Of a DNA stretch of 64,000 nt, positions 1 to 35,425 are shown one piece after another. How positions within the stretch are numbered: position 1 is the first letter of the stretch; each line of letters opens with the position of its first letter. The notes beneath the pieces are model-generated. The model searched no databases, had not been told where the DNA came from, and saw nothing but the letters and a program-made list of their open reading frames with translations. The translations under genes and the position numbers were made by a program. Origin of the DNA: Kudoa neothunni (Eukaryota; Animalia; Cnidaria); contig OZ199840.1 of NCBI GenBank assembly GCA_964304625.1, forward strand, positions 779,284-843,283, read 5' to 3'.

Positions 1-2694
1 TAATTCCTCCTATTTTATGTTATTTTTATATTCATTGTTCATAGTTATAATTTATAAACTTTGTTTATATGTTCTTCGAAAAATTAAAAAAAAACTTTTT
101 TTGCTCAGTTATTAAAGAAAATCTTTACACTTCATCCCTCATTTGAGCCAATTACATCTCATGTTATTATTATTTTGCTTAAAGCTTTACTAGATCACGG
201 AAGTTTTATAAATGAGGACGTTATTTACCCCCATACGCATGATGGGAATAATTTTGATGGTCGCCTGATTTAATGTGTGATTCTTGTAAATATAGCATAC
301 GGAATTAATTAAGTCGATCATTAATAAATTTCCAAGATTCATTATTTACAATAAATAATTATAATTTGTCTTTATAGACACTTTAAACCTGATAACATTA
401 AAATCACATAACCCATTATTTTTTTAAACTTCAAATAATGTGTAAACAATTTTTAGTGTACTTTAAAAATGAGGAATAATTATAATAGGAAAATTCTAAA
501 TAATAATATATACTTAAAAAAGAAAATATTATTTTATTTCTCAAACATTTGTCATAGAGTCTAAATCAGTAGAAATATGCTTCTTTTAGAAATAGAAGAA
601 TTTACAGATAATTATTTTAAATAATTATAAATTTTATATGTAATCAACGTGGGTGATTCGTAGTTCGTTGTGTAGTGTAGTTTGTAATTTGAGAAAATGT
701 CAAAAATTTAACTTACACATAATATTATAATAAATTATGTAATTTTAATCTATTTTAAACGATATTTTACCATTAAGAAAATAACTTATTAATGTCGAAA
801 ATGCTTAATTATGTTTTTAAGGATTATTTTTTAGTGAAGTGTAGTTCGTAAATGTTCTTACGGGTTGAAATTTTTGATTTCGATTAACGTCAGAATGTGA
901 AAAGAGAAAATATTGAGTCAATAATTTAGAAGAGAAATATGAAATAATAATGTTTTTCCAATAACAAGCGAAGGCGTGGAACGGAAACAATATTGAAAAA
1001 TACGATTAGATAATTGATTTTGAAAGTGGTAGTAACTGTAACAAAGACCAAAATTTTCATACGTTCGATCACTGAGAAAGAAAAATTATTCCATTCAAAA
1101 TTACCTCTCTCTCATTTGTCTGATTAGGACATTACTTGAAATATCATAATTTTCATAGTTATTAACATCAAACGGATATTGAACGAGAATTACACACTAT
1201 AATTGTCAGAAAACTTAAGAATATAACTATAACTAAATAATTTACCTCTAAGTAACATATTATAATTGATTTAAAGCAGGGTTCGTCAACGACAAGCCCA
1301 GGGAAGGGAGTCCACTTTAAAGTTCAGTTGTTTTTATTATTAGACATACCTTGTATTATTTATCTTATTTTCATAATCGATCTCCTCGACTCACAAAGAC
1401 GATTGATTGCAATATAAACGAACTTAATTAAATATTATTTCCTCTTTTACTAAATGTAAATGTGTAAAAAACAAAATAAAGCTCAAAAAATCCCCCTAAT
1501 TAGATTTCTTTCACATTTTAACTTATTAAACGGTACTTTTCTCATTGTGACGAATGGAAACGTATAATTATTGTTTTTAAAGATTTTGAACTATCATCTG
1601 GGTGTCTGAAATATTAAGTCCAATATAAATAAAATACATGACAGAATAACTGTAAAAAACAACATATTTTTATGAAAATATATAAAACGCCCGTTATTAT
1701 TTTCTAGCGATATCATCAAAATGTATTCTAATAAACTCAAAAACATATTTATCAAGCTGATTTTCAATTGTATTGTGTTAAATGCAATATATCTAAATGA
1801 CTAAGATATATTCTGACCCGCCTTATATTATAACAGGACTATCCGGCCCTGTTTAAAAACATTTTATCGGAAACATTTAATAAAACGGCGATCGTCCATA
1901 CTGAATTGGGATTGGATATGAACTTGTAAATCTGTTGGAAACAAAATTTTTTCTTTTGGAGTCTTAGAATTAAATAATCGTTTAAATACCCGTTTAGTGC
2001 ATTTTCAAATCTGGTCAAAGATTAACGACCTTAAAATGTAAATGAGAAAGTTCTGATAAGTTTTAATCTTCAGATAATATTGAATATCGACCAGGAATCG
2101 ATTAATTAGTGAACGAAGATAGTTTGTTTTGTGCATTTGATAATTTAAATAATATCTCGTACAACGAAATCGTTGTCGAACCTGCCTAGAAAATTTATAA
2201 TGAACTTATAGATCCAAATACCCTTTTAATGAAATTTATATTCTTGTCGAAAATTTTAAAATGTTTTTAAAAGGTGTTGGTTGCGAATTAAAACTCAAAT
2301 CTTAAGTAAATAATTATATTGGGAATATTCAAAAAATCTAAAATAATGGATTCTTCAAATAATTTTTATAAAATATTTAAAATTTCTGGTTTTCATTCAA
2401 TTTTAATGTTGCCTGTGTACAGCATTATCACAAAAAACGTCACTAAAGAATAGATCTTAATTTTCTACGATTTCCAGGTGATTACAAGTTATTAGTCATT
2501 TAATTTATGATAATTTTTTTTTCAATATTATTCACGAAGTTGTTAGGAAGTCAATGTCAATATATAACGAAAGCTAGGATACTTAAAATAAAAAAATCAA
2601 ATAAAAGAAAAATTGTATATTGCTAATTAACGAAGAATTTTAGTTTAGATGTAATAAGAAAGATATATGTTTTTTTAGATGGCGATTGATCTAT

Positions 2695-3499
2695 TCAAAT
2701 ACACGGCGTGTTGGCACGACGAGTCAATGTGACTTCCACACGCCGAGGGTCCGAAATGTCTCGCATTTTCGAACGGGTCAATTTTTTATTACCTTGAAGA
2801 TCATTAATGGCTGTGGATAAAAATATAATACCTTGTACATTGTTTTCTTGAGGATTTGTATCGCCCAAAAATCTGTCCTTTAAATATAATAGGGCCATAA
2901 TATCATTGATTGGTGAATCATATTGGTTAGAAAATGGATCGATAACCTCTTGCAATTCATTACCAGTTAATTTATCGCTTTGATGTTCATCGTGGCTGAC
3001 TTGTAAATCAGGAGTCTCATTTCTAACATTTATGGTGGACGTTGTTTGGACTGATTCCTATAACGTTTACAAAATGACGGCGTGTGAACAACAATCGAAT
3101 TTACAGTTGAGGAAGTTTGCGTAGGAGCACTATTTACACTTGATGTGGATGTCGATGTGGTTATGGATGTCGATGTGGGTATGGATGTCGATGTGGGTAT
3201 GGATGTTGATGTGGGTATGGATGTCGATGTGGGTATGGATGTTGATGTCGATGTGGATGCGGATGTAGATGTCGATGTAGATGTAGATGTCGATGTAGGT
3301 GTGGTCGTGGATGTAGATGTCGATGTAGACGTGGATGTGGACGTGGGTGTAGATGTGGTTGTAGATGTAGATGCGGGTGTAGATGTCGATGTAGACGTAG
3401 GTGTGGACGTGGATGTAGATGTAGAGGTTGGTTCATTTATACTAGGTGCATGGTTATTCATATTTGCTTGTTCAGCTGCAATGTAATCAAGAGGATTAC
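2695..3499 (-). CDS. Mucin-like Thr/Ser-repeat protein (spliced; 5' exon unresolved)
   Basis: ORF 3030-3461 is a (TS)n tract; a 47-bp GT..AG intron joins it in frame to ESVQTT... and ORF 2695-2955; AG acceptor at 3500-3501. Confidence 0.65.
3142..3426. repeat. Coding hexamer tandem repeat (GATGTN units; 18-bp higher-order unit encoding IPTSTS)
   Basis: Directly visible repeat; shorter version at about 21025-21178. Confidence 0.95.
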
Positions 3500-4332
3500 C
3501 TATTTTATTTTATTTAAAGGTTTCATGAGATCATATATAATTTTTAATGACTTTTAAAGTTTTAATGAGAGCGATGTGGTATGATCTAAGTAATTAAGGT
3601 CATTAAAAATTTTTATTTTAGATAGACAATTATTAAGAATCGTATTTATTAGTACGAAATATTTACGAGCAAAACAAAAATTGTCAATTTACTCGGAAAA
3701 CATTTGCTTATTCATAGAAATATATTATAATAATTAAAATATAAATTATAATATTATTGGTAACAGTTCAAATGTTTTTATTATTAAAGCACATTGAAGA
3801 TAATGTATACTTTAAAATATGTAGGATTTTCTAAAATATGGAATAACTGATTATTCTCTAGTATAAATGATGTGTAGAAAAACTTCTAAGATTAATTTTT
3901 CAAATTTTAGTTAAAAATAAATCAATAAAAAAATTTTATATGCTTATTCTGATTGGTTAATATATAACTTAGAATTAAATTTTACATTAAGATTAATAGT
4001 TTTAAATAAGGTTAAATTACACCATCGAAAAAAAACAATTGGGGCGAGTTAACCATTCATTTATGTCTAAATTATTAATTTAAATAACTTGTTGATGAAA
4101 ATATTCTCTCTATTAGCATCATATTATTTATAAATATAAATATTATTGTAATAAATTATATTAATGTTTTCATAACCTGATTATTAATATTGATTATTTT
4201 ATATTAATATTGAAATTTTATAAAATATATTAATTTATGAAATTTTTATTTGTTTTAAGAAAATCAATATCGCCTAGTTAACGTAACGCAGAAAGTCTAA
4301 ATTCTTTACTCCTATCTACAAAGAGTGATTCT

Positions 4333-5101
4333 TCAAGCATCATAATCGAAATTAACTTATTTGATATAACTCATAATTCTCGGAAAAGTTTTCTTACCTA
4401 CGAGTTTGATGTTTTTATCTATGAGGTGCTCTTTCAAACGATCTAGGCATAAATTTGTTATATATGCCAAATAAGATTGCTAAATTATTCACTACATACA
4501 CATGTGTTTATATTTAGATTACATAACTAGCAAGTTCTTCTTCAGAATATTCTTTCAGTAATTTGTGTGTCATTATTCTCTAAATCGCGGATGATATTTG
4601 AATACAAATAATCACGTACACCACAAGTTAAATTAGATATAGCATCAGTGAAATAAATAACTATTAAATTATTAGAGGAGATTTAAAAGAGTACTCTAAA
4701 GATTTACTTTTGTTACTGACGCAATAAGCGTTTGTTCCACATCTGACTTGAGAACTCATTTTATTGAATTCAGCCGTAAGGTCTTGAGTTATAACACTAC
4801 ATATATCACTCTATTTAATTTGTAAAAGCTTGAATACTAAAGACATTACCAGCTCTGAATTAATTGTAGCATACGACTCGCTATGGATATCAAATATACG
4901 TTTCAAATGATCGTATGATGTTTTCGTTAAACACGCCTAGCATCCAACGTAAAATACATTATTTGGGATGTAAACCTGCGGACAATTTCTTTCAAAAACT
5001 GGGGTTTCCGCCGATGTGCATGTTAAACTAAACACTAAAAAAATAGTTATATTATATATGATGTAACATTTACAAAGAATAAGGAAACATTCGCCTAACA
5101 T
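4333..5101 (-). CDS. 8-exon secreted Cys-containing protein of about 165 aa, family member A1 (function unknown)
   Basis: Manual splicing across GT-AG introns of 39, 39, 39, 47, 40, 43 and about 42 bp gives MLGECFLILLFSLTCTSAETPVFERNCPQACLTKTSYDHLKRIF...CGTNAYC...LTC...LC; hydrophobic N-terminus; intron positions match the paralog at 34646-35425. Last exon is the least certain. Confidence 0.8.
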
Positions 5102-7873
5102 ATTTATTAATTCGCAATTATTTTAGTATAGTTTTACGCGTGATGCTTATATCCATGTTATATCGGTTAATTTATTCTCATATTATTTCTTTTGTTTAAA
5201 TTAAATGTGCGGTTTTTTAGAAATGAAATATCTGATAATATATTTATTGTGAATATTAAACAGTATTTTTTACTCTAACAAAAACTTATCAACTGATAAT
5301 TTATAATAACTGTACAAAATTATTACTTATCGTACTTTAATAGATGGTACTCATAGAATATACATAACTTTTAAAATGGAATTGAAAAAGTATATATTAA
5401 GGATAAATCTGTAGTGAATCTAATTGATAAATTTATTATAAATTTCGTTAGGTTATGCGTTAAGACGTACGTATGGTTAATCCATATTGGAACAATTAAT
5501 GAATATAAACTCTAAGTAATAATTTTAATATAAATTATAATAAAAAGTTATATTGGAAATTACAAAAAAAATTATTATTAATTTTTATCCAAAATATACT
5601 TACAATTAGAATTGATTTCTTCAAGTTGGTGTTTGTTTATTCATGTCTGAATCTGCGTATACCTAAATAAGTTTACCTTGTTTTATATATGAAATATTAG
5701 ATAGAACAATATATATAACGTTAATTACTTACTATTGGCTTACTAAACTAAGGAAGGTATCTTCGCTGTCCTAATTGAATGGTATTTTATTCGTAATAAA
5801 TGACTGGTTGATTTGGCTGAATCATTAATAATGAAATAGTTGATAACGTTATTAACCACTTTTTATAACACCTTTGAAAATTCATTATGGATTTTATGTG
5901 ATTAATATTTATATATTATAAAATTCTATCGTATAGAATATTATATAATATCCTCGTCGTATTATTTAATGAATATTACAATTGGTATAAATTTTTATTA
6001 ATATTTGATTTATCTCTACATGAACGTCCAATTGTTTTATGTTTTTTTAATATTTATTTACCTTGTATAATTTTAACTTAAAAAATCTATTCATAAGGTA
6101 TATTTATTCTAATCAATCGGTTCACTTATTGACTAACCTTCAACTTTAAAAAATGTACTTACGAATTATTACAACCCTGGAGTCAACAGTGAACTCATTA
6201 AACGGAAAATATATTTTCTACGAGAAAAATATAGGTTTATATATTTTATGATGAAGTTCATATAAAAAAGCTCTACTTTTCGGAATCATTGAATTAACAT
6301 TCTTAATAATATGTAATATTTATTTTATGAGTAATTATTTTTTTATTAATTATAATCGGATTAGCAAAAATAAATTGAATATTAGCGCAAAATTGTCCAA
6401 CCTTATAGTATTTTATAAACAAGAAAGTTTTATCACATGAAATCCTTATTAAAATAATAAACTATAGTCGTAAAATTTTGAATGTGTCAAAATTTAATGG
6501 ATACAAAAATCCTCAAGTTGAATTTATATAAAAGCAAGCTCTGATTCTATTATGGATCTTCGTTCTAAACACTCCTAATGTTATACTTGACTCCAAAGAG
6601 GAGTTAATATATTCACTTATCGTAAGTTTCGCATTTTTTAATAGATCGCTGGTGCTAGAAATATTGAATTTCTCTTTTGTGTGATACCAGAAGTTTTATT
6701 TGAAGATATCAAACTGGTAGGAACTAGATTTTTTGATCTTCCAGAAACGCCAAAGATTTTTTATTTCTCCAAATAAATTAATTTAAGTAGTGTATATGGG
6801 TTTCGGTTCTACGTACTTAAATGATTTATATATTCATTTTAACATAGTGTGGTATTCAACTCAGTTACACGCGTTAAATTTTAGACTGCTAATTACAGCA
6901 TTATGGGATGATTTTAAATCAAACTAACGAATATATGATTATATTAATATATTATCTAGCGTGGGATAATAAAAGTTCTCATTAGATATTAGCTATTGGG
7001 AAATTATCATTAAAAACAATTTTTTGCTATTTTAGAACATCATAAATTATTATATTTTTTAACATTATTTATATTAAAAATATGATAATTTTTATTGCGC
7101 CCTCTGTTCTTATGGTAAACCTGATAAAAATATTCTTTTAATTTTTATCAAAATATGATAGCACATCCGGATTTTTATATAAAAATCAAGTAGATCTGAC
7201 GTTAGAGCCGAAATTAGCCATTAGTGATAGTAGGAAATTATGTATGCTAGAAGTTCCAACAGAATTATTTCATAATCACTCCATAATGGATGCGTCGTAA
7301 AAAATTATGATTGATTAAGTTATAAAATTATTTAATTTCAATAAAAATGGAAAACTTTAGCCACGTTTCAATTCAGTAGAGTCAAAAATAAATAACTTGG
7401 CTATTTATCGAAAAATAAGGACTCTAATATTAAAAGAAATGCAGAAATAACATAATATATTATATCAGTTGTTGTACATCAATTTTTCTAAATAGTTTAC
7501 TAAGTATGCCGCCTTCATATATTTTATGAAATATATAATCCGAAATAAACCGCGAAAGTACACTTCACATTATTAATAGTATTTCCTGCGCCTACTGCAA
7601 AATTATCTTCCTGTGGTTTGAATTTTATTGATATGTAAAAAAAAAGTTTTAAGCAGATTAACTACTCGTCAACCAGGCACGTACCGTCAGGGTAGGCAAG
7701 GTAGGCAGTGCCTACCCTTTTGAATCAAAATTAATTAATTTTATGAGGATAAAATCCCTTTTATCTCAAAACCACAATAACCATTCAAATATTCTTAAAA
7801 AATTACAAAATATTCGAGGTATTAGTAGCAAAATAGGCACAAGTCGTCTCTGCTTTCTAATCGTTATATAAAA

Positions 7874-10800
7874 GGAAGTGGCTATACCTCAGGTAATCAA
7901 TATCTCTAAAACTACTCAATATTGTTTGCCAATATTCCATATATCATCTAATGTTTATCTAACTTAAGTTTTTGTAGATTTTTGAAAAATTAAAAAAAAT
8001 TATTATTTCTTTGTGTGACCATACACAAGTCCAACCGCAGCTGGGCACGATTTTTTATTTTTTTAATATAATTTCATCAATTAGAATAATTATACACAAA
8101 ATATAGAAATAATAATAAATTTCAGAGTTATCTATAACTTGAGCGCGTAATTTCTCTTTCTAATTAGCGTGGCGCAGGATGAGTTCAAATATGTTTGCAA
8201 TTGGAAAACGATTTCATTCTTTCGAGGAACTCGATAATGCTATAAAAAATTACTAAGAGTCAAACTTTTGCATTCTTTATAAATATCAAGCGATGACTAT
8301 TTCGAATATTCGAAATAGAATTACAAAATAAATTAACCAATCTCTGCGGTATCATGAAATTACACATCGTTGTATTTTCAGTGGCAAGAATAAAACAAAA
8401 TCCGATGGAATTAGAAACAAACCGGCATTAATGGGAAACTGCCCCTTGGTTTTATACCTTAGGACCTCTGTTGATGGTGTAGCACTTGAAGTACGTTCTA
8501 GTATATTAGAACATAATCATGATTTAAGTGCAGTGCTATATCGAAATCTCCCGAAACAACGAAAAATTGACCTAAATGACCCAAATCTCGTGGAATTAAT
8601 TCACTTTAAGGTCAATACAAAATTAATTCAAAATAAAATTTACAACGAAACGGGTAAAAACATCCGTTTGAAGTCCATCCACAACATAAGAGCAAACAAA
8701 GACTCATTCGGTGATAACCTATGTGTAATAGAGAAAATATTGAAAGAAGATTTCAATTGTTGCGTTAGGATTTTATATGATAAACATAAAGTCGTTAATC
8801 GTTAATGGAATTTTTTTCACTGACGACAAAATGAAATCATTTTTGGAATTTTATCCTGAGGTTATGTTCATTTATGCAACTTATAAACTCCTTAATTCAA
8901 GGTAACTTTTGAAAATGGATGAATAATTTTATAATTTTAGAGCCCCGTTATACATATCTGATGGGGAGTATTCTTTTGGTTTGACTCACATTTCGAGTGC
9001 CTGCATTCTCTACGAAGAGATGGAAGATTCAATCCAATGGTTTTGTAATACTTTGGCAGAATTGATACCAAACTTATCAAAAAATGTACATACCATTGTT
9101 ACAGACAAGGATGAAAAGCTAAGAAAATGTCTCAAATTAAGTTTTCCACTATCATCATTCATTTTATGTAAATTTCATGTGAATCAAATTTTTCAAAGAC
9201 ATCACCGTTAACAAATTTGAGACATCTTTTATTAAAAGACAAGAGATTTTAAGTTGTTTACAAAAAATGATGTACTCGACTGATTACATTGAATATTTGC
9301 ATTATGTTGACCAAATTCACGATTTTAAAAATCCCAAATTAAGTGAATATTTCAAAAGAAATTGGGAAGGAGTATACAATGAATGGGTCATTGGTATCAG
9401 CAATACGAAAAATTTTTACGACAACGAAACCAATAATCGCCTTGAAGTAATAAATTCCCAAATTAAAAGTGTTGTCCAAAAATTCAGCTCGTTGGCCAAC
9501 TTCATCCAAAGTTTTTTTAAAATTCTAAGTTCACTTAAAATTGAAAGGGAAGTTTCTTCAATTGATCAACTGTATTATGAATCAAATGAGATTCTCAACA
9601 ATAAGCAGGTTCTACACCATAAAGAATGTCTGAGGAATTATGCACTTATCATGCTTCAAAAAGAACATAAATTCGTGGACAATACTGCATTATCCTCTAA
9701 CTCAAATGAAACCAAAAGTCGATCAACGTGTCATTGTTTATTTTATCGCTCATTTTCATTACCATGTCGCCATATTCTATGTTACAGGTTATCAGAAAAA
9801 CTCCCGTTATTCTGTGAAACATTATGCAGTGATCGATGGAAAAAGGCATACGGAATGAAGTTTTTAAATGCGGAATCTACAACTCAAAATAATACAGAAA
9901 ATCTTCCTACTGTTGTTCTTGAAAAGAAACAAAAAATTAACATAAAGACATTTGTACAAAAGTTGAAGTACGCGTCAAGTTTTACAACCAAACTAGCCAA
10001 TACAACTTCCGAACTTTGCGGAGAATTTTTCGAAAAATCAGTGAAATCAATAAATCTATTGGAAAAAATAATTAGAAGTCACGATGTCATGGTTATCGAT
10101 CAGTTCCTTGATACATGTGATTTTTGTTTATCAATGAAATATTAAATTTTAATTAGTTAAAGATGAAACTGAATTTCAAGAAAATGTATAAAATTTATAA
10201 TTTGACTTTAACTAATAAAAATTAGGAGTCATCGAGAAATTTAATAGAAGTCTCAACTACCAAAATACCAAAACTTAATTCCAATGATGATTTTGGTCCT
10301 CTAGAAGAACAAATTGATTGTAACGATGAATCAAACGCCATCGTAGAACCTCAATTAAAAGGTTAAACCAAAAAAAAATTATGCTAATTTTTGTTTAGAT
10401 CTAGTGATTCCTTCTAAAGTTAAATCGATTGGTCGACCACGAGGAAGTCGTTTAACTGCAATCGGAATTATAAAGAAAAAGAAATAAAATTATAACTTTA
10501 AAACTAAATATATAAAAAAATTTAATTTTGAGAATAATCCTCTACATGTGTTATATGAAAGCTGTTTTATTGAGTGATCGCTTAAACTAATATTTCAATC
10601 CATTATTAGTTTTATTTCATATAACGTGAACAATGTTAATTTCTTAAAAAAAAGACAAACATTATTATTATTATTTCTATATTTTGTGTATAATGATGCT
10701 AATTGATGAAATTATATTAAAAAAATAAAAAATCGTGCCCAGCTGCTGTTAGACTTGTGTATGGCCACACAAAGAAAAAATAATTTTTTTTAATTTTTCA

Positions 10801-10946
10801 AATTCTACAAAAACTTAAGTTAGATAAATATAAGATGATGTGTGGAATATGAGCAAACAATATTGAGTAGTTTTAGAGATATTGATTACCTGAGATACAG
10901 CCTGAGGCCGACCGGATTATCAGGTACCTGAGATATAGCCACTACC
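7874..10946 (+). mobile_element. Mutator-like (MULE) DNA transposon nested in the hAT element
   Basis: About 245-bp terminal inverted repeats (7874-~8118 and ~10665-10946) and 9-bp TSD TATATAAAA (7865-7873, 10947-10955). Confidence 0.93.
8179..10487 (+). pseudogene. MULE transposase with SWIM zinc finger, disrupted
   Basis: Fragments carry HNH, IVTDKD and CKFH (MULE domain), TNNRLE, SWIM-type CHC...PCRH and a C-terminal GRPRG AT-hook-like motif; several stops and frameshifts. Confidence 0.85.
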
Positions 10947-11279
10947 TATATAAAATCCACGTAAAATTTCGTGACTAGCACGTGCCGCATCATTCTGCGC
11001 ATCACTGCATTTTTAATGGCCGACCGTAGGCAGTATAAATTCGGCCTAGTATCGAGTCACATGATCTTTCTAAAATATTCCATTTGCGCGTGTATTATTA
11101 ATTCAAATAAATTGTTCTGTTTCTTCAATTTTTTCTTAATTTTAATTAAAGGTAATTTTTAAAATACGATAATCTATATGACAACTATACTGGGAATATC
11201 GCCCAAAGTTAATACTAATTATTGTCCTACTTGTAAGAAGGGCCCGCGCCTCTGTTAGTCTTATTTCATCCCTTCAAAT

Positions 11280-13401
11280 ATGAATAGAAGATATCTTAAA
11301 GAGTTTTCAAAACTTCCTTATGAAGATAAATTACAAATTATAAGAAATGGTAGTCTGACTCCTGGTCTTAAAAAACTTAAAAAACTGAAAGGGAAGACAA
11401 TTATCTGGACGTTTAATAATTCGTGATATGAAAAAAAAGAGGGTTATGTGGGTGTACTGTAACAAAAACGCTATTTTGTTTCCAATGTTTGCCTTTTTCG
11501 AGGACTAATGAAAGTGTGTGGATCAAAGAAGGATATTTCGACTTAAATAATTTACCAATCGCTTTAAATAAGCATGAGCGATCTGCAACACACTATCAAA
11601 ATCAAGTTTCACGGAAAACATTTGGATTTATACGCGTAGAATTGTTTCTTGATAAACAGAAGAATATTTCAATTGAACTTCACAATAAAAATGTTAAGGA
11701 AAACAGAAAGATGTTGAAAAATTTGATCCGCGCAGTTTGCTTTTTGATTCAACAAGAACCTACTTTTCGCGGTGATAATGAAAACAAGCTGCCTTTAAAT
11801 CATGGTAATTATTTGGAGTTGTCGAATTATACCGCAAAATTTGACGAAAAATTATCGTATCATTTACAGAATTCATCTGTTTTTTCTGGCATCTCCAACA
11901 GGATTCAAAATGATCTGATTGAGGCTATAAAGGTGGTTTTTGAGAATAATATTAAAAAGGAATTAGCACAGGCTCCGGTCGTTGCCATAGAATCGGATGA
12001 GACGACCGATATCTCATGGACATCTCAATGTTCAACAATATTAAGATACGTATTGGGATCGAAAATTAAGGATGTTTTCATTGGATTTCATACTCTTCGA
12101 GGCAGAACAACGGATGGTGTGACGGAATGTGTATTTAAAAACATATATAAATACAACATCGAAGAGAAATTAGTCGCATGATCGTATGATTGAACAATAG
12201 TTATGGCATTCCATTTAAATGGAATTCAGTCAAAAGTTCGACAAAAGATATTGACCGCGCTGTTCACTCACTGTTATGCCCATAAGTTAAATCTTGTGTT
12301 GCCACAATCTACCAAATTTATTCCTGATTGTACGAGCCTTTTCAAGACTAATGAAGTACTTTTTTATTTTCTCAAAAAGTCAACTAAACAGGTCCAATTT
12401 TTTGAGGAGATTGTGTTGAGAAGCATTCCAACAACAGTGGCAACGAGATGGAATTCAAATTCAAAATTAGTGCAGATAATATTAGAGTATCACGGTGATC
12501 TTCGCAAACGTTTCTACAATGTAAACAACAATCCCTAATTTTGGGATTCAGACACTTTATTTCGAAGTATTGGACTTTACAATTGGCTGAAAAATGACTC
12601 AACATACTTTTTAATGCTGATATATAATGAAATTTTCGTTTTAGCTGACGCGCTCTTCCATATATTGCAGACAAAAATGATAGACATTGCGTATTGTATC
12701 GAAAGAATCAATGTAACAATAACAAAACTTGAAGATATGCGCATAAGATTTAAGTCATTGTATTATAATTTCGAAAAATACTGTCAAAAAATATCTTAAT
12801 TAGACCTATCCTTCCCCTCAATGTGACAAAAAAATGAAAAAGCGATATTATTGGTTACAATAGTCAGTGATATAATAAATAATCTGAGAACGAAATCTAA
12901 TGATTTAGAAAATCTCAAGTTTATTTCATTGATTAATGGAAATAATTTTGACATTTTATCATGCCAAATTGACGCGAATGCCCTTGAAAGTCTGCAAACG
13001 AATTATGAGAAAAGCATTGACATTTTAAGACTGAAAGGTGATTTAGCTGGAATTTTAATGCTCACATATTCAATGAATAGTCCCCTACAAAATTGTTCGA
13101 TTTTATCTCCCAAAATCAACTGGACCAAATATTTCTCGAAGTTGTCAATTTGTTACAATTAATTTTAACGATTCCTGCAACAACCGTTTCTGTGGAAAGA
13201 TCGTTTTCCGCATTGAAACGAATTAAAAGCTACACCTGGAACAGGATGACAAACCAACGACTTTCTTCCCTTGCATTAATATCGATTGAAAAGGAAAGAC
13301 TTAATCAAATGAAACAAGACCCAACCTTCAATTTCTATGAAAAGGTGATTGATACCTTAACTACAACAAAAGAAAGAAGAATAGGTTTCCTTTATAAGTA
13401 G
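11280..13401 (+). pseudogene. hAT transposase (ZMYM1/DUF4371-like), disrupted
   Basis: DETTD, HCYAHKLNL, TRW and hAT dimerisation motif IPATTVSVERSFSALKRIKS..RM...RL; split over five ORFs. Confidence 0.9.
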
Positions 13402-15021
13402 AAACATACAAAACACCAGCTTTCAAATATTTTTGTAATCTTAACTTACAGCAATGATTTATCCGCTTTATTTGGGCCTATCATAACATTATTGGTTTGT
13501 ATTATAAAATATTGTAAAAATAATCCCTTTGTTATCTAATTTAGATGTCCATATAATATAGGACAGAGTAGAAAATTTAAATTAAGAATGTTCTATGGTG
13601 TTAACTAGACATTACCTCCATAATAATTGTTAAGAATGGAGTATCATTAATTTCATGATATAAAAGCCATTATAAAATAAAAATTTATCATTCAATTATT
13701 TTTTTAACCTATTTAATTTGATAAGGAGACGTCCACAATCCAAATAAATCGTTGGAGTATAAATTAATTGCATTCTCACGCATAGACGTTAATTTAATTA
13801 AGTAAATATTTTAAAATCCAGAAAAATTCTATTTCCAACTGTAATATTTAATTTTTAGTCTACAGATACAACTTAGGAATTACAATTTCCGGTAAATAAG
13901 TTATTACAAAATTTATTGAGCAATAATTCTTACACATTAAGTCAAAACTAATTTTCTTGAAAAATTATTTAAAGATTCGATATTATTTAGTTTCATTTAT
14001 TCAAACATAAATAGTTAAAATTTTGGCTGAAATTTTCTTGTACAAAGGCACCGGCTGCTTACCAAGAGCAAGTACCCACGACCCACGCCTGTCGTCAACA
14101 TTAGCCGCGCATGCGCGGACTGTAAACCGGGGATGGGAATTTTGTTAAAAAATTATAATATTGAAATTTCGATCGTGTCGTTGGGTTTTACTTGTGACAA
14201 TTTATGTTGGTGCTCGCTCACACGAACGAAACTCATGAATTTGCCACTCCTGTATTAAACGGGTTGCTAGCAGGATTAATAAAAACCCGAGGATAGACGG
14301 TCAAAAATCCCAAGCCCTAGTATTAAAATTGTATGTAAGAATGAGCGAAAAAAATTTGATTAATCAAATTATGACTCAACTAAACTCAACGAGGATTTGG
14401 CTGTAAATCCCATATAACGTATACTTCTACGTAAATTGTCATTCTAGAAAACAATACTTCTGGAGCCGCGAAAAATAATCCACACAGGCTGGTCGATTGT
14501 TGCGCGTGCGTGTGATATTTCAATTATCAAATAAAATATGGGAACATAATTATATCGTCGTTCAACACGAATTACAAAAGAATTATTTGATAGTAAAATA
14601 AAACGTTGTGGCCTGCATTAGTACTTAGATTCTATATTAAATTTTGTTAAAGTATATACTTCATGCGCACGCAGATTTTGTTGGCGACTGTTTGTCAAGC
14701 GCAATATAACGTTTTTTTGGCAAATTTTGCCATGGGAAAATTCCATACTGTTTAGATAATAATATCCCCCATTTATCGGTTTAGATGATATCATTTTACA
14801 ATTATTATCTAAAATAATTTTTCAACAATTACCATTCGTTGTTTATTTTACAAGAAATAGGTTGTTTCCGTTTTAATAGCCTAAAAAATCATATTTCTCG
14901 GTGGTTACCTGGTTTCCATTGATTTGTAAAACGAAATTTCTTATGCCAATATTTTTTTAATAAATAATGTCCAATGTAATCGAAATGCTGAACAATTTTG
15001 TCCAAAATTCTATTTGCCCTT

Positions 15022-15118
15022 TGTAGCGTACCAACTTAACCGGCAGCAGCCGGTTGATAATGGGATTATTTGTGCTTTGATAAAAAGGGGTTTTTATTAG
15101 CGCAAAATACATATTACA
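15022..15118 (+). mobile_element. Solo LTR (97 bp) of the gypsy element
   Basis: TG...CA, same sequence as 5' LTR 26890-26986; flanks CCCTT and CCTTT; occupies the site of the full element in copy 2. Confidence 0.95.
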
Positions 15119-15621
15119 CCTTTCAAGAAGGATTCTCATGTGTTTTGATTTTTCGAAATAGTTAACCTTAGTGAATTGTATTTTACAAGGTAAAATATAA
15201 ATAGTTTCCTTAACGGCAGATTAGAGTAATGCTAATTTTTTCCTACTTTTTAGTATTTCTTTAGAAAACAATCATAATAACAAAAAAAAACAACAGATGA
15301 CACGAATTATATCTGATATTAGATTTAATCGTCCTTCATGTGAATTATCCTCTGATGAAATCGGATTAAGAGTCTGTAATTTTTTAAAAACATAAATGAT
15401 ATATATATATTTATTGAAAATACATAATATTTCATATTATTTGAATCAGTTAATTTAAATCAAAATTCCTCCTAACACGTTCAATTTCCCTATGGCGCAA
15501 TGAATGATTGAGACCGCAGTAGGTTTTGTATAGAATATCCCCAAAAAATATTAAAGGATAAAACAACAAACGTTTTACGAGGAGGAAATATTGTGAAGAA
15601 GATAATATGTGTGTTTATGAA

Positions 15622-16202
15622 TTACGGAGTGGATGAACATTCATCTTTAGTTCTCTCATGTGGAACGGAGAACGTGATTTCTACTCTCTTTGGTTTCTTC
15701 TTAAATTTCTTCCCCATAATGGAATTCCATAGATTCTTATTCAAACTACAAGATTTTTGTGGATTTGATTCAGCCGTTGGTAGCTTACATTTTTCGGAAA
15801 TATCGTCATCAGTAGAAGAAACTTTCTTTTCGTTTATAACGGGATCGTTAATTTCGGATGATGGATCATGTTCAGTAGACTTGATTTGGGTAGGTTGGAT
15901 GAAATCGGTACTATGTGTTTTAACATTTTGGGGATCATCGGTATTGTACAGCGAGGTAGGGCCAGCTGGTTCAGTAAATTCGAATTTCTCTGTTTGCACA
16001 GATTCCATATAGGGGATATCAGTCGATGTTGGTGATGATGATGGTGTTGTTGTTGTTGTTGGGAAAATTTCGGTCAATGTTGTAAACGACTGATTAACAT
16101 CGTCATATAAAGTAGATGAAGATGGTGAATTAGGTTGGTTTGTTCTTAATTTTGACGTATTTATTCTAATATTTTCGCACGATGAATAATTGGTAGATTC
16201 AT
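15622..16202 (-). CDS. Ser/Thr/Pro-rich mucin-like protein, main exon (upstream exons likely)
   Basis: Frame stays open upstream of 16077 to an AG acceptor at 16203-16204; shares ESVQT and P[KR]RVE[IV]T with the 2695-3499 product. Confidence 0.6.
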
Positions 16203-16699
16203 CTAATTTAAATAGTATTATAAATAATGATAACTATGAATTGTTGGTATTAATTGAAGGTGTATTAACCTTAAAAAGAGAGTTTTTATTTGTTTTCAGA
16301 AATAGAATATTATTATAAGTAAATACTTATGAATCACAAAGCGTTTACTGCTTATTCGATATAATTTTTGATACAATAGAAAAATATTTAACCTATAAAT
16401 AAAATAATAACTATAAAATTAATTATATACATTATTTTTCCGATAATATATTTAAAAATAATTATAACATATTATAATTATTGAATTTTTATTATTGACA
16501 TAGGTTTAATTAATTACGTTTTTATTTATTTTAGTTTTTCATTAATTATAACGATGTGAGTTTTTCAAACACTGCTTTCTATTAAATCTCAGAGTAAACT
16601 GCATGTGTGGCTACATTTACTACTTCTGAAACAGTTCGATTATTTCTACGGAATGGCGCTTAGTAGGGTCTATGTTTGATCATCATCTATTAATTTATT

Positions 16700-17601
16700 A
16701 TGGAATCTTGTTGAGTATATTTATTATTTATTTTATTTAGACATCTTTGAAGTCTTTAATGCTGATATTTATGCATTGATTTGATCACATTGGTCCGCCA
16801 CAATAAGTTCATCTTGGTTTTATATCTGCATTTTAAGTTACCGGAGAGAACTAGATTTAGTTTTCATACTTATAAATGTCTTTAAATAACATCACGTTAA
16901 TTTCATAATAATTGATGGCGTTTAGACCGACTCAAAAAGGGGATTCCAAATGGACCCCATCGGCAAACCCGTAATTTTTTCGCACACAGTAAGTTTAAAA
17001 TCATAAACCAACCAACCAACCAATAGATACAGATTCTGATTTGGAGACACCAAAAGGAATTCATTAACTTTATTAATAAAGACATATTGAAAATCTTCTA
17101 TCTTTTTTAGCTCGTCAATTAAATCGACTCTTCCACTTGTAGATCAACATCCATATTTTCTCCCTTTGAGTTTTTATTACTTTTGTAGGGAACAATCGTT
17201 ATAATGTTAAAATATCCAGTCTGTATAATTAAAATAGCATATAAAGCAGATCTTATTTTTACATCCAAGAACATCATTATTTCAAATTCAATGTTTGATT
17301 TATTCGTTATTTTTTGAGAATATTTTACAATTTCAACTTTTGAGGTAGAGTTGAAATTTTTAACATCTATTGGCACATAAGCCATAAATTTCCTTGTGTT
17401 GAAGTAAATTCGTTAAGCACAAGCCAGAACTGTGAACAACAAATAAAATGCATAAAAACTATTGTTATTTTAATTTTTCTAGAGTGTAATTGATGGAATA
17501 TTTTACTTTCGTTATAAAGTTTGTATAGTACAAATTAAGTTTTCTAGAAATTGATTAATTTATGTTTTATTGCGATTTTACGTACCACCCATAAGTCACT
17601 G
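16700..17601 (-). mobile_element. pogo/Tigger-like (Tc1/mariner superfamily) remnant with one terminus
   Basis: TA-flanked end CAGTGACTTATGGGTGGTACGTAA at 17601, same as the TIR at 49422; decayed translation resembles a pogo N-terminal HTH (KVEIVKYSQK) and the CENP-B-like S.GW...F motif. Left boundary approximate. Confidence 0.6.
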
Positions 17602-20575
17602 TATATAAATAAATAAAACTACTCTTTATTATAGCATTGTTAATTAATATATTTTGTAAGAATTCCAAACGAAATATATTAATAAAATTAATCAATAAAA
17701 TATTTTTCACATTCAAATTGATAAAACTAATAAAAATGTTTCTACAGAATTTTTTTATTCAAAAATTATTAATGAATATTAAAGTATTTTCATCCTTATT
17801 AATTAATGTTTTTCACATCCATTAATAAATCTAAATTTTTTTAATACAAAATTTTTGTTAAACAATTTAATTAAGATTGAACTAATTTACTCTAAATTAT
17901 ATCATGTTTCTGAGTAAATTTTATATAAGATTTGTGTTAATAATATTGATTTCTTGATTAAAAGAACAGTTAAACCATTAAAATTAATTAATTAATTATG
18001 ACATAAATAGATATAACTTTAAATTATAGAAAATATATTTAGTGATCGTAATATTATTGAAGAGTAAATTTAATAACAAAGTTATATTTTTTCTCATTCA
18101 AATCTATTTGAATATTTCAAAGTGCTATATATTTTATGAGGGATTTAATTGCGTAGAGCAATACTACGTTATCTTTTACAATATTCATTTAAAATAATAT
18201 AAGATTTTAAATTTCCTATTAAAACCACATTATAATGACATCCATGATGAGAATAATCTAGCGATAACATTATATAAACTGTTAAACCATATGATGAGTC
18301 AAAATTTAGCTCCCATTCAAAGATTAACTGAATTTGAAATCATGTTTAAAAAGAACATAAGTGCCTATAAATTCATCTAACGCGAGATTACAACCATCAG
18401 TTATTACTTACATTCATATTTTTCGGTTCATTATTCCGATAAACAAACAACAACCAGTATACCTCATTAAGTCATCTTTTAAAACCGAGCCTTGCTCTTG
18501 TCGTTCATTTTATATGTAATCAACGTGGGTGATACGTAGTTTGTAGTGAAGTGTAGTTTGTAATTTGAGAAAATATTAAAAATTTAACTTACACATAATA
18601 TTATACTAAATCATTTATTTTTAATCTATTTAAACGATATTTTACCATTAAGAAAATAACTTATAAATGTTTAAAATATTTAATTATGTTTTAAGAATTA
18701 TTTTTAGTGAAGTGTAGCTCGTAAATGTTCAGATGGGTTGAGATTTTTGTTTACGAGTGATGGCGAAATATGGAAATGAAAAAAATTGAGTTAAGAATTT
18801 AAAAGAGAAATATGAAATTATAAATTTATTCCAAAACCAGCGAAGGCGGGAAGCGTAAATAATATTGAAAAGGACGTTTAGTTTAGTGATTTCATAAGTG
18901 GCGGTAAATATCACAAAAACGCAAATTATCATAAGTTCGATCACAGCGAACGATAAATTACTTCATTCGAAATGACCTCTCTCTCATTTGTCTGATTAGG
19001 ACATTACTTGAAATATCATAATTTTCATAGTTATTAACATCAAACGGATATTGAACGAGAATTACACACTATAATTGTCAGAAAACTTAAGAATATAACT
19101 ATAACTAAATAATTTACCTCTAAGTAACATATTATAATTGATTTAAAGCAGGGTTCGTCAACGACAAGCCCAGGGAAGGGAGTCCACTTTAAAGTTCAGT
19201 TGTTTTTATTATTAGACATACCTTGTATTATTTATCTTATTTTCATAATCGATCTCCTCGACTCACAAAGACGATTGATTGCAATATAAACGAACTTAAT
19301 TAAATATTATTTCCTCTTTTACTAAATGTAAATGTGTAAAAAACAAAATAAAGCTCAAAAAATCCCCCTAATTAGATTTCTTTCACATTTTAACTTATTA
19401 AACGGTACTTTTCTCATTGTGACGAATGGAAACGTATAATTATTGTTTTTAAAGATTTTGAACTATCATCTGGGTGTCTGAAATATTAAGTCCAATATAA
19501 ATAAAATACATGACAGAATAACTGTAAAAAACAACATATTTTTATGAAATTATTATTTTTCTAGCGATATCATCAAAATGTATTCTAATATAACTCAAAA
19601 ACATATTTATCAAGCTGATTTTCAATTGTATTGTGTTAAATGCAATATATCTAAATGACTAAGATATATTCTGACCCGCTTTATCTTTTAAAAAGGATTT
19701 TTCGGCCCTGTTTTAAAAAACATTTTATGGAATAATTTAATAAAACGGCGATCATCAATACTGAATTGGGACTGGATATAAGCTTGAAGATCTGTTTGAA
19801 GCAAAATTTTATCTTCTGGAGTCTTTGGAATTTAATAATTCATTTATATAACCCGTTTAATGCCTTTTCCCAAATCTGGTCCTAGATTAACCACCTTAAA
19901 ATGTAAATTAGAAAGTTCTGATAAGTTTGCATTTTCTTATAATATTGAATGTCGACCAGGAATCGATTAATTAGTGAACGAAGATAGTTTGTTTTGTGCA
20001 TTTGATAATTTAAATAATATCTCGTACAACGAAATCGTTGTCGAACCTGTCTAGAAAATTAATAATGAACTAATAGATCCAAATACCCTTTTTAATGAAA
20101 TTTTTATTCTTGTCGAATATTTTAAAATGTTTTTAAAAGGTGTTGGGTTGCGAATTAAAACTCAAATCTTAAGTAAATAATTATATTGGGAATATTCAAA
20201 AAATTTAAAATAATGGATTCTTCAAATAATTTTTATAAAATATTTAAAAATTTCTGGTTTTCATTCAATTTTAATATTGCCTGTGTACAGCATTATCATT
20301 AAAAAACGTCACTAAAAGAATAGATCTTAATTTTCTACGATTTCCAGGTGATTACAAAATTATTAGTCATTTAATTTATGATAATTTTTTATTCCAATAT
20401 TATTCACGAAGTTGTTAGGAAGTCAATGTCAATATATAACGAAAGCTAGGATATTTAAAATAAAAAAAATCAAAATAAAAAGAAAAAGAAAAATTGTATA
20501 TTGCTAATTAACGAAGAATTTTAACTAAGATGTAATAAGAGAGATATATGTTTTTTTAGACGATGGTTGATCTAT

Positions 20576-22626: not shown

Positions 22627-23397
22627 TCAAGCATCATAATCGAAATTAACTTATTTGATATAACTCATAATTCTCGGAAAAGTTTTCTTACCTACGAGTT
22701 TGATGTTTTTATCTATGAGGTGCTCTTTCAAACGATCTAGGCATAAATTTGTTTTATATGCCAAATAAGGTTGCTAAAATATTATCTACATACACATGTT
22801 TTTATATTTAGATTACATAACTAGGAATGTCTTCTACAGGAAATTCTTTCAGAAATTTGTGTAACACTATTCTCTAAATCGCGGATGATATTTGAATACA
22901 AATAATCACGTACACCACACGTTAAATTAGATATAGTATCAGTGAAATAAATAACTATTAAATTATTAGAGGAGATATAAAAGAGTACTCTAAAGATTTA
23001 CTTTTGTTACTGACGCAATAAGCGTTCGTTCCACACATGACTTGAGAACTCATTTCATTGAATTCAGTCGAAAGGTTTCCAATTATAACATTACTTATAC
23101 CACTCTAAGTCCATTTGTAAAAGCTTGAATACTATAGACATTACCAGCTCGGAATCAGTTGTAGCATACGATTCGCTATGGATCTCAAATATACGTTTCA
23201 AATGATCGTATGACGTTTTCGTTAAACACGCCTAGCATCCAACGTAAAATACATATATTGGGGATGTAAACCTGTGGACAATTTCCTTCAAAAACTGGGG
23301 TTTCCGCCGATGTGCATGTTAAACTAAACACTAAAAAAATAGTTATATTATATATGATGTAACATTTACAAAGAATAAGGAAACATTCGCCTAACAT
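22627..23397 (-). CDS. 8-exon secreted Cys-containing protein, family member A2
   Basis: Same splice sites as A1, spliced frame open, many replacements (e.g. RIVLHKFLKEFPVEDIPSY versus RIMTHKLLKEYSEEELASY). Confidence 0.8.
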
Positions 23398-26300: not shown

Positions 26301-27007
26301 AAATTGTCATTCTAGAAAACAATACTTCTGGAGCCGCGAAAAATAATCCACACAGGCTGGTCGATTGTTGCGCGTGCGTGTGATATTTCAATTATCAAAT
26401 AAAATATGGGAACATAATTATATCGTCGTTCAACACGAATTACAAAAGAATTATTTGATAGTAAAATAAAACGTTGTGGCCTGCATTAGTACTTAGATTC
26501 TATATTAAATTTTGTTAAAGTATATACTTCATGCGCACGCAGATTTTGTTGGCGACTGTTTGTCAAGCGCAATATAACGTTTTTTTGGCAAATTTTGCCA
26601 TGGGAAAATTCCATACTGTTTAGATAATAATATCCCCCATTTATCGGTTTAGATGATATCATTTTACAATTATTATCTAAAATAATTTTTCAACAATTAC
26701 CATTCGTTGTTTATTTTACAAGAAATAGGTTGTTTCCGTTTTAATAGCCTAAAAAATCATATTTCTCGGTGGTTACCTGGTTTCCATTGATTTGTAAAAC
26801 GAAATTTCTTATGCCAATATTTTTTTAATAAATAATGTCCAATGTAATCGAAATGCTGAACAATTTTGTCCAAAATTCTATTTGCCCTTTGTAGCGTACC
26901 AACTTAACCGGCAGCAGCCGGTTGATAATGGGATTATTTGTGCTTTGATAAAAAGGGGTTTTTATTAGCGCAAAATACATATTACATTGGTGCCGAACGT
27001 GTTTAAC

Positions 27008-27781
27008 ATGAAGTTTACATTTGAATTTGACTTTGCAAAACCAATATGTGATCAGCTGAAAACCCTCGAGCTAATGGCGGTTGCTAACCAATGGAATGAA
27101 GATCAGCTCTATGCTTTTGCTGCCCTAGCCATACCTGCTGAGGATCGAATCTCTCTGCTTCCGAATGAGATAGGAGTATCCGAATTGGGTAAATTCAATG
27201 CACTCCGTAGAAACATTGTTACCTATGCTCAAAACAAGCAATGCCCTCTAGATTCGTGGAATAAATTGCTCTGTAGCTCCATAAGACCAGGCGTAAACAT
27301 CGACTCATATGTCAAACGTCTTCTTGAATATATGAAAATAGCGAGACCAAACATGAGTCAAGATGATATAAACTTTCTTTTGAGACCGAAAGTCATCGAA
27401 TGTGTTCCAAATGATACATTGAAACTTGTTTTGAAGGCTGAAAATAAGTTGAGTCTCGAAGAGATCATCGAAAAAGTGGAGTTGTACTCCAAGTTAGAAA
27501 AGAGAAATGACGTCTGCTGTATTGGAAATGAACCCGAAACTTCTAATGTCTCTGCAATTCATCAAAAATATAGATATAAGAACGATAACAAAGCCCATAG
27601 AACTCAAACGAACGAATGTTCACAATGTGGAAGCTTCAATCACAAAACATCGGTTTGTAGACGCGACGCAATCCGTTCATACTGTGGAAAACAGGGTCAC
27701 CTTAGAAGAATATGCCGAAGCTATTTGGGAAACTTAAGAGGGGGAACTGGAGGTCAAAAACGGTTTCCCCGACAACACTAG
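27008..27781 (+). CDS. gag: Gag with CCHC zinc knuckle(s)
   Basis: ATG at 27008; CSQCGSFNHKTSVC knuckle plus a second degenerate one (RSYCGKQGHLRRIC). Confidence 0.88.
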   Translation: MKFTFEFDFAKPICDQLKTLELMAVANQWNEDQLYAFAALAIPAEDRISLLPNEIGVSELGKFNALRRNIVTYAQNKQCPLDSWNKLLCSSIRPGVNIDSYVKRLLEYMKIARPNMSQDDINFLLRPKVIECVPNDTLKLVLKAENKLSLEEIIEKVELYSKLEKRNDVCCIGNEPETSNVSAIHQKYRYKNDNKAHRTQTNECSQCGSFNHKTSVCRRDAIRSYCGKQGHLRRICRSYLGNLRGGTGGQKRFPRQH

Positions 27782-27786
27782 ATCTT
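27727..27786 (+). promoter_or_regulatory. -1 programmed ribosomal frameshift signal
   Basis: In-frame slippery heptamer G GGA AAC, 6-nt spacer, 10-bp stem GGGGGAACTG/CGGTTTCCCC; pol lies in the -1 frame. Confidence 0.75.
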
Positions 27787-30700: not shown

Positions 30701-30966
30701 GACCTTACAGAATTATCAAAAGAAATGGATTGGTATACACTGTTCAAGATTCTGATGATAAATTGCTAAACGTACACTTCAATGATACTATTAGAACCTC
30801 GAAACCATTTAATAAGATTATGCCACCTCCTAAATCCTCCGGCTATTCAAACCATCCAATAAAGAATCCAACTACAATAACCTCAAGTGGTAGAGCAATA
30901 TTATTACCGTCAAAATATGATGGTTTTCAAATTTATGGAGGGGAGGAATGTAGCGTACCAACTTAA
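27727..30966 (+). pseudogene. pol: Pol (protease, RT, RNase H, integrase) with one in-frame TAA at 28327-28329
   Basis: IDTGS, YLDD, ETDAS, HHCC, HADF/TDQG/GLAER and GPY motifs; KP*RLP where KPYRLP is expected. Confidence 0.92.
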
Positions 30967-31547
30967 CCGGCAGCAGCCGGTTGATGATCGGATTATTTGT
31001 GCTTTGATAAAAAGGGGTTTTTATTAGCGCAAAATACATATTACACCCTTCAAGAAGGATTCTCATGTGTTTTGATTTTTCGAAATAGTTAACCTTAGTG
31101 AATTGTATTTTACAAGGTAAAATATAAATAGTTTCCTTAACGGCAGATTAGAGTAATGCTAATTTTTTCCTACTTTTTAGTATTTCTTTAGAAAACAATC
31201 ATAATAACAAAAAAAACAACAGATGACACGAATTATATCTGATATTAGATTTAATCGTCCTTCATGTGAATTATCCTCTGATGAAATCGGATTAAGAGTC
31301 TGTAATTTTTTAATAACATAAATGATATATATATATTTATTGAAAATACATAATATTTCGTATTATTTTAATCAGTTAATTTAAATCAAAATTCCTCCTA
31401 ACACGTTCAATTTCCCTATGGCGCAATGAATGATTGAGACCGCAGTAGGTTTTGTATAGAATATCCCCAAAAAATATTAAAGGATAAAACAACAAACGTT
31501 TTACGAGGAGGAAATATTGTGAAGAAGATAATATGTGTGTTTATGAA

Positions 31548-32128: not shown

Positions 32129-32629
32129 CTAATTTAAATAGTATTATAAATAATGATAACTATGAATTGTTGGTATTAATTGAAGGTGTATTAACCTTAA
32201 AAAGAGAGTTTTTATTTGTTTTCAGAAATAGAATATTATTATAAGTAAATACTTATGAATCACAAAGCGTTTACTGCTTATTCGATATAATTTTTGATAC
32301 AATAGAAAAATATTTAACCTATAAATAAAATAATAACTATAAAATTAATTATATACATTATTTTTCCGATAATATATTTAAAAATAATTATAACATATTA
32401 TAATTATTGAATTTTTATTATTGACATAGGTTTAATTAATTACGTTTTTATTTATTTTAGTTTTTCATTAATTATAACGATGTGAGTTTTTCAAACACTG
32501 CTTTCTATTAAATCTCAGAGTAAACTGCATGTGTGGCTACATTTACTACTTCTGAAACAGTTCGATTATTTCTACGGAATGGCGCTTAGTAGGGTCTATG
32601 TTTGATCATCATCTATTAATTTATTATGG

Positions 32630-34645: not shown

Positions 34646-35425
34646 TTAAATAACTATAGATTATTCTATTTACCGGAGTTTTTTTCTCCAAAAATAAATT
34701 ATACCTATAAACGTCAAGTTATTCCTTTTTGTGAATTTTATGAATTGATCTTCACATAAACTTATGAGATAATTATATATATTTGACCTCTAATGATTCA
34801 ACTCATATACACAAATAGATTTTATAAAATTACTTTTCCGTCTGTTATTGGCTCTTCATTATAATTTTTCATTATATTTACGGCCATTATTCTCTATATT
34901 CATCAATTAAATTCTTAAAACACATATAAAAGTATACAGCGCATATGATATCATAAATCCCCTTCTTGAAGAAATGAACTAACAAAATATTTTATGGTTT
35001 CGATTCATGCAATGATTAAACTACTTTTTTTGTTGACACAACATGCATTTATGCCGCATAAAATATTTTCTCTCATTTCCTTGAAATGTAAATTCAAATT
35101 TTGATTTATGTCTTTTGTAATATTTTTCTAAATGAACGTAAAAACATAAACAATTTTAAAAATACAAGTCCTGGAGCGTTCTCCGAATACATCTTGACAA
35201 ACGTATCAAGTATATTCTTCAATTGAACATAAGACGGTTCAGTTAAACAAACCTAAAAAATCTAATACAAAGATTAATTTTTTATATTGAAACCTCGTTG
35301 CAGTTTTCTTCAAAAATAGGAGAATCCATTAATGCCAATCCATAGGTAATACAAAGCACTATAATCACATTAACAAATTATTTGATATATTATTTACAGA
35401 AAATTAACAAATAATTTTTAAACAT
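34646..35425 (-). CDS. 8-exon secreted Cys-containing protein, diverged paralog A3
   Basis: Spliced product MFKNYLLIFLLCITYGLALMDSPIFEENCNEVCLTEPSYVQLKNIL...CGINACC...IICA RIM...LC has the same intron positions and phases and the same six Cys as A1/A2; last exon uncertain. Confidence 0.8.

Follow-up and report, generated by a model that had tools for sequence, protein, structure and literature searches.

Near one end of the 64,000-nucleotide stretch of DNA analyzed here (the window) lies a small protein-coding gene, A1, and a tandem copy of it, A2, lies on the same strand (Table 1). The window is AT-rich (approximately 21–39% G+C) and eukaryotic in character, with many introns of around 40 nt, and the gene models share this character: the eight exons of A1 measure 28, 59, 87, 103, 41, 57, 82, and 23 nt and are separated by introns of 39–47 nt. 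Every intron begins with GT and ends with AG, the reading frame is open in both A1 and A2, and the two predicted proteins are 84% identical. An AATAAA motif occurs 83 nt past the A1 stop codon, at 4250–4245 on the minus strand. Upstream, a TATA-like box (5151–5146, minus strand) precedes the ATG by approximately 45–50 nt, and it aligns in all five of the paralogs described below. When three RNA runs and a DNA run, labeled with the same species as the runs that contain this stretch, were mapped onto positions 4100–5300, just six poor reads aligned, confined to the AT-rich ends. The 1.9-Gb DNA run would correspond to approximately 48-fold depth if the genome is about 40 Mb, yet almost nothing mapped; these samples therefore probably do not contain this organism. 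The 40-Mb assembly may then derive from an organism that lives in association with the labeled species. A search for the SL1 RNA family, as a probe of nematode origin, gave no match, and neither did the control genomes.

Table 1. Coordinates of the genes, repeat-unit segments, and mobile elements at the locus. Positions are those of the window unless given as positions of the contig; unit 1 carries A1 and unit 2 carries A2.
Feature	Position	Strand	Description
Gene A1	4333..5101	minus	8 exons, 480-nt CDS, 159 aa; open frame, comparative structure
A1 exons	5101-5074, 5034-4976, 4936-4850, 4810-4708, 4660-4620, 4579-4523, 4479-4398, 4355-4333	minus	
Gene A2, tandem copy of A1	22627..23397	minus	Exon lengths as in A1
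A2 exons	23397-23370, 23330-23272, 23231-23145, 23104-23002, 22954-22914, 22873-22817, 22773-22692, 22649-22627	minus	
Gene P3, older third-type paralog	34646..35425	minus	Same 8-exon structure, intact frame; 32–36% protein identity to A and B
Gene B1	~746310-747084 of contig		8-exon paralog, 32 kb before the window
Gene B2	~762781-763548 of contig		8-exon paralog, 16 kb before the window
Mosaic segment S of unit 1	631..4248 (counterpart 18507-22011; third copy before the window)		91.5–91.9% identical to unit 2
Near-identical 3' stretch	4231..4441 (~22525-22735)		0 differences in 4242-4441; most of exon 7, intron 7, exon 8, 3' UTR
Divergence island A1/A2	4442..5041 (counterpart ~22736-23337)		Exon 2 end to exon 7 start; 47 differences/600 bp, 7.8%
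Homogenized 5' flank	5342..7671 (counterpart 23638-25967)		10 differences/2330 bp, 0.43%
Unit 1-only 6.4-kb insertion	7672..14106		DUF4371 (transposase-like) ORF
Homogenized part of unit 1	14107..18213		99.5–99.9% identical to unit 2's 25975-26986 + 30949-34144; includes solo LTR
Ty3/gypsy-type LTR retrotransposon, unit 2	26890..31045	plus	LTRs 26890-26986, 30949-31045

A1 and A2 belong to a family of five tandem members, the others being B1, B2, and P3, with none elsewhere in the 40-Mb assembly. A 114-kb self-comparison, covering the window plus 50 kb upstream, resolved four tandem units of approximately 17–18 kb that carry B1, B2, A1, and A2, followed by P3. All five genes consist of eight exons with matching phases, have canonical splice sites throughout, and preserve an open frame; exon lengths differ among them by multiples of three while intron lengths drift, and protein identity between the family types is just 32–38%. 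The common exon structure of the five paralogs is good comparative evidence that these predicted genes are real. Their products begin with a hydrophobic, signal-peptide-like N-terminus and are thus predicted to be secreted. Six cysteines are common to the mature parts, at residues 27, 31, 82, 88, 105, and 136, which gives the spacing C-x3-C-x50-C-x5-C-x16-C-x30-C. The two types differ in charge, the mature protein having a pI of 5.4 in the acidic A type and 9.1 in the basic B type. A seventh cysteine occurs at residue 62 (exon 4; approximately 4799–4801 in A1) in A1, B1, and B2, where A2 has serine and P3 threonine; copies that differ at this residue may differ in a free thiol or an intermolecular disulfide.

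Relatives of the family were sought exon by exon, with single-exon queries of 29–34 residues that have little reach. In Pfam, these queries produced only a chance-level match to Adt-1 (E 0.012), and in the PDB nothing below E 0.002, the match at that level being unrelated. An exon 4 profile searched against 1.84 billion representative proteins retrieved two spurious repeat proteins and no credible relative, and exon-wise searches of metagenome contigs returned no relatives. Two protein classes resemble the family in general layout: insect odorant-binding proteins and saposin-like proteins are small, secreted, helical six-cysteine proteins, and the family has in common with them the signal peptide, the length of the mature part (about 140 residues), the conservation of six cysteines, the division into many short exons, and the tandem arrangement. 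Odorant-binding proteins follow the pattern C1-x25-30-C2-x3-C3-x36-42-C4-x8-14-C5-x8-C6, and saposin-like proteins the order C-x2-C ... C ... C ... C-x5-C with nested disulfides. The spacing in our family fits neither; the odorant-binding family (PBP_GOBP) was rejected on this misfit and on the lack of an exon-wise Pfam match, and saposin-like proteins were rejected because the C-x5-C pair here lies in the middle of the protein instead of at its end, with exon-wise Pfam and PDB searches again without a match. Judged from exon-by-exon searches with short queries, the family is best called an orphan, and the suggestion in the initial annotation that it was previously undescribed is upheld within the reach of these searches, five members now being recognized.

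Alignment of A1 with A2 revealed 35 coding base differences that alter 26 of the 159 residues, together with 10 intron substitutions and two 1-nt intron indels. The replacement and silent counts given in the initial annotation are correct (Nei–Gojobori Nd 28.5, Sd 6.5), and so is its description of the gene structure: exon lengths are equal in the two copies, there are no coding indels between them, and the splice sites are kept. Exons 4 and 6 hold most of the changes, as it had stated, with 13 and 10 differences, respectively, those in exon 6 amounting to nine replacements and no silent change. Exon 1, exon 8, and the six common cysteines are the same in A1 and A2, in line with its description of an unchanged signal peptide, C-terminus, and cysteines. 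The flanks had been called unchanged; they are near-identical on the 5' side (5342–7671 and then 14107–18213) but not on the 3' side, where identity lasts for only about 200–300 bp before giving way to approximately 85% in 4031–4230 and to a 424-bp insertion specific to unit 2. The promoter stretch at 5042–5341 contains five differences.

In and around the gene, the divergence is concentrated in an island that begins approximately 110 nt past the ATG and stops before the last exons; over 4142–7671 as a whole, unit 1 and unit 2 are 98.2% identical, with the differences nearly all in the gene. The clustering is pronounced, with 47 differences in 4442–5041 vs 10 in 5342–7671 (Fisher p 5e-24). Within the island are two dense blocks, one comprising the end of exon 3, intron 3, and the first half of exon 4, and the other exon 6 and intron 6. 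In these blocks the exons differ by 15–17% and introns 3 and 6 by 9–10%, and the divergence of exons and introns (28/175 vs 8/82) is not significantly different (p 0.25). The introns themselves are unequally affected: introns 3 and 6 together differ at 8 of 82 positions, whereas the other five introns differ at 2 of 207 (p 8.6e-4). Core introns and synonymous sites are 6–15 times more diverged than the flank. The substitutions comprise 21 transitions and 24 transversions and include all 12 types; when polarized by B, 16 derived states fall in A2 and 8 in A1, with 6 positions matching neither, and the corresponding counts for B1/B2 are 20 and 17. Divergence that proceeds tract by tract and includes the introns points to tracts of old divergence, and not to codon selection in a young duplicate.

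The excess of replacements over silent changes had been read as a sign of diversifying selection on a hypervariable gene. The coding sequence of A1 and A2 contains 380 non-synonymous and 97 synonymous sites, so that 28.5 non-synonymous against 6.5 synonymous changes is simply the neutral expectation: dN is 0.079 and dS 0.070, giving an omega of 1.13 (Fisher p 0.83), and across estimators omega ranges from 0.96 to 2.0 without ever being significantly above 1. Because four fifths of the coding sites in such an AT-rich genome are non-synonymous, counting 26 replacements to 6 silent changes without regard to the number of sites can mislead. For exons 4 and 6 combined, omega reaches 3.7 with just 1.5 synonymous changes (one-sided p 0.11), and in exon 6 alone all 10 changes are non-synonymous (one-sided p 0.09). 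There is accordingly no significant excess of replacements, and in exons 4 and 6, where dN/dS is not significantly above 1, the adjoining introns are approximately as diverged, which is roughly the pattern that the initial annotation had equated with plain old divergence.

The second pair, B1/B2, provides an independent comparison with 34 amino acid differences. For this pair omega is 0.74–0.89 overall and 0.45 when only exons 4 and 6 are counted; comparisons of A-type with B-type genes give approximately 0.5. In both pairs, variation is concentrated in corresponding parts of the protein, encoded by the end of exon 3, by exon 4 or exon 7, and by exon 6. At the level of individual codons, repeated variation at the same positions is not above chance, with 26 variable codons in the A pair, 33 in the B pair, and 7 in common (hypergeometric p 0.32). 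Diversifying selection, as proposed in the initial annotation, is thus borne out by neither pair nor by the comparison between types. The core evolves at about the neutral rate under little constraint, and hypervariability of the gene does not follow from these data.

Turning to the array as a whole, the clearest record of exchange between units is preserved in segment S, which consists of blocks with 0% and blocks with 8–17% difference and in which the closest unit switches from block to block. Between 1170 and 1640, no difference separates unit 1 from unit 2 (0/471), and the preceding unit departs from the two at 38 sites. Between 640 and 1100, it is the preceding unit that unit 1 matches without a difference (0/457), and unit 2 departs from these two at 77 sites (16.8%). 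In a three-way alignment this switch of closest relative is highly significant (Fisher p 2.6e-31), and the alternation of identity demonstrates that the array swaps blocks between its units. The B pair presents the same picture in a sharper form than A1/A2, with 82 differences in 800 bp of gene vs 2 in 2800 bp of 3' flank (~10% vs 0.07%; p 2e-52); its island covers the gene and promoter-proximal DNA, and the other flank differs by approximately 1.7%. Near-identity that extends to non-coding DNA, sharp boundaries, and incongruent adjacent blocks are all present in the array, as in tandem paralogs under concerted evolution. The divergence of the gene core, both the overall 7.8% and its dense blocks, falls in the same range as the 8–17% of the unhomogenized blocks in S. 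Segmental conversion, which the initial annotation had offered as a possible origin of the variation, therefore holds in part: recombination between copies shapes the pattern, but it is not the source of the variation, for which the assembly contains no A-like donor. Conversion from B or P3 in particular was rejected, as the differences between A1 and A2 include no B-like tract and do not copy B or P3 states.

Mobile elements in the units serve as time markers. The Ty3/gypsy-type element of unit 2 has very short LTRs of 97 bp with TG..CA ends, which differ from each other at 2 of 97 positions and are flanked by a 5-bp target-site duplication, and it contains open frames for protease and for reverse transcriptase, RNase H, and integrase. 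At the same site in unit 1 is a solo 97-bp LTR (15022–15118) with the same 5-bp target duplication. Since the insertion site is common to both units and the LTRs differ at 2/97 while the flank differs by only 0.1–0.5%, the identity of the flanks is younger than the insertion. The 6.4-kb insertion found only in unit 1, which contains inverted repeats (7880–8118 and 10665–10902) that are 93% alike, probably represents a DNA transposon inserted once the units had been homogenized. As judged from the sequences of these elements and units, the divergence of the gene core and of S would be much older than the sharing of the flanks.

We lean, without great confidence, toward the view that A1 and A2 are old paralogs whose flanks were recently homogenized by crossover or conversion, while the core kept its old divergence and evolved near-neutrally. 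According to this proposal, they would be old tandem paralogs of a gene restricted to this lineage, which codes for a small secreted six-cysteine protein, and would reside in an array whose ~17-kb units trade segments via unequal crossover and short-tract interlocus gene conversion. Through one such recent event, the 5' flank and the DNA beyond it (>13 kb, including the gypsy element) would have become almost identical, and a separate short tract would have homogenized the 3' end of the gene. The ~600-bp core that codes for the mature protein would have been spared from overwriting and would retain its older divergence of approximately 8% overall and 10–17% in the two blocks. Within it, the poorly constrained parts (the end of exon 3, the first half of exon 4, and exon 6) would change approximately neutrally, with the signal peptide, the cysteines, and a few motifs conserved, and the island could have persisted without the action of selection. 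Mosaic divergence of tandem paralogs under gene conversion is a described outcome (PMC3924837; bioRxiv 10.1101/2025.10.29.685298), and the present locus is a new example of a known process in an uncharacterized protein family.

Several observations weigh against this reading. The unhomogenized patch coincides with the gene in both independent pairs, and by a rough estimate a purely neutral patchwork would produce gene-coinciding patches in both with a modest probability of about one in ten. Across the whole island, exons are approximately twice as diverged as introns (35/323 vs 10/208), and the ~40-nt introns are probably constrained themselves. Exon 6 of A1/A2, in which no change is synonymous, is a further point of this kind. 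Finally, a 600-bp gap within an otherwise continuous homogenized stretch needs two events or patchy repair.

The coincidence of island and gene, in DNA that is otherwise homogenized around both A1/A2 and B1/B2, is also the foremost argument for a different explanation, in which overwriting of the mature-protein core is selected against, through diversifying selection or distinct functions, and divergence peaks at the sites under selection and in the short introns between them. Such a divergence peak under gene conversion is a recognized signature of selected sites, as in the red/green opsins (PMC3924837; PMC3728101). The omega of the A core, at approximately 1 or above and 3.7 in exons 4 and 6 vs approximately 0.5 between the A and B types, is in line with this explanation, as is the recurrence of variable stretches in the same protein parts in both pairs, and the contrast between the acidic A type and the basic B type indicates that the family has diversified in its properties. 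Even so, no omega is significantly above 1, and the value of 0.45 for exons 4 and 6 of B1/B2 runs in the opposite direction; the two pairs have no more variable codons in common (7; p 0.32) than chance predicts. Moreover, islands that are equal or greater occur in stretches that look non-coding, at 640–1100, where there are 1- and 2-base indels, and at 4031–4230, and in the B pair the promoter-proximal DNA has diverged as well. We therefore regard selection against overwriting as unlikely, though with an appreciable chance of being correct. A shade more doubtful is the fuller proposition that in this secreted six-cysteine family, from a possibly host-associated eukaryote, diversity is kept by selection against homogenization and recombination spares only the mature cores. 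If true, the array would comprise ligands or antigens whose functions differ.

Two further explanations would place the origin of the island elsewhere. The possibility of an assembly artefact, with A1/A2 (and B1/B2) being two haplotypes or strains of one locus placed side by side, draws on the observation that the units differ in transposon presence and in divergent patches, as haplotypes can. The gene order is nevertheless B1, B2, A1, A2, P3, whereas two haplotypes of a B–A block placed next to each other would produce the order B, A, B, A; unit 1 matches unit 2 in one block and the preceding unit in another, as fits exchange within an array and not two haplotypes; and the assembly is highly contiguous, with 40.3 Mb in 4 contigs, 11 Mb of which belong to the contig considered here. 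In addition, four runs of one sample, which may be the source of the assembly, contain 47–94% of the words sampled from the A1 stretch. An artefact of this kind is hence improbable. Slimmer still are the prospects of a recent duplication (0.1–0.5% ago) followed by locally raised change, whether from targeted or transcription-linked mutation or from donors absent from the assembly. It would accommodate the 6- to 15-fold excess of divergence in core introns and synonymous sites over the flank and the position of the island, from about 110 nt past the ATG to before the last exons. Against it, the substitution spectrum is ordinary and changes fall on both copies, no donor is available among the five members, which include no third A-like copy in the assembly, and segment S has the same island pattern, fully explained there by block exchange between units. 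Templated or deaminase-type hypermutation was rejected on the same two grounds, the presence of all 12 substitution types and the lack of a third A-like copy in the assembly.

Old divergence preserved in a recently homogenized array, the reading we prefer, has parallels in known systems. Like the red and green opsin genes, A1 and A2 are paralogs ~18–24 kb apart in which flanks and some introns are near-identical by exchange and a short coding segment has diverged, with sharp block boundaries and different closest relatives by block. Unlike in the opsins, where the peak falls on known functional residues and the flanking introns are homogenized, the introns beside the variable exons have here diverged, and omega is not significantly above 1. 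The MHC, RPP8-type NLR clusters of plants, and CEACAM are variable secreted or surface multigene families shaped by conversion together with selection. The present genes resemble these systems in being a tandem family with patchwork similarity and a secreted-looking, fast-evolving product (omega ~0.5 between types), and depart from them in having five members, no transfer of variable blocks between members, and no significant positive selection.

The locus illustrates that near-identical flanks can be young and a variable gene between them old, and, small as it is, it displays the mosaic divergence of a tandem array cleanly. With two gene pairs, datable insertions, and block exchange among three units, it offers a good test of selection vs chance in the escape from homogenization. 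The family itself would gain in interest if the organism is a parasite or symbiont and the proteins are secreted.

Two other sequences accompany the units. Downstream of A1, at a distance of 870 bp and in the same orientation, is an ORF (3030–3461, minus strand) for a Ser/Thr/Pro-rich, mucin-like product of 143 aa, which may be a gene of its own or a distant exon of the six-cysteine gene. The ORF is built on an 18-nt repeat, with a tandem repeat at 3142–3425 and a counterpart in unit 2 near 20860–21310, and it is present in each unit with a variable repeat length, the comparison of unit 1 with unit 2 containing 121 gap columns. A repeat of approximately 560 bp occurs in both units (17032–17594 and 32959–33521), and a 76%-identical inverted copy lies 15–30 kb further on, at 48626–49141.
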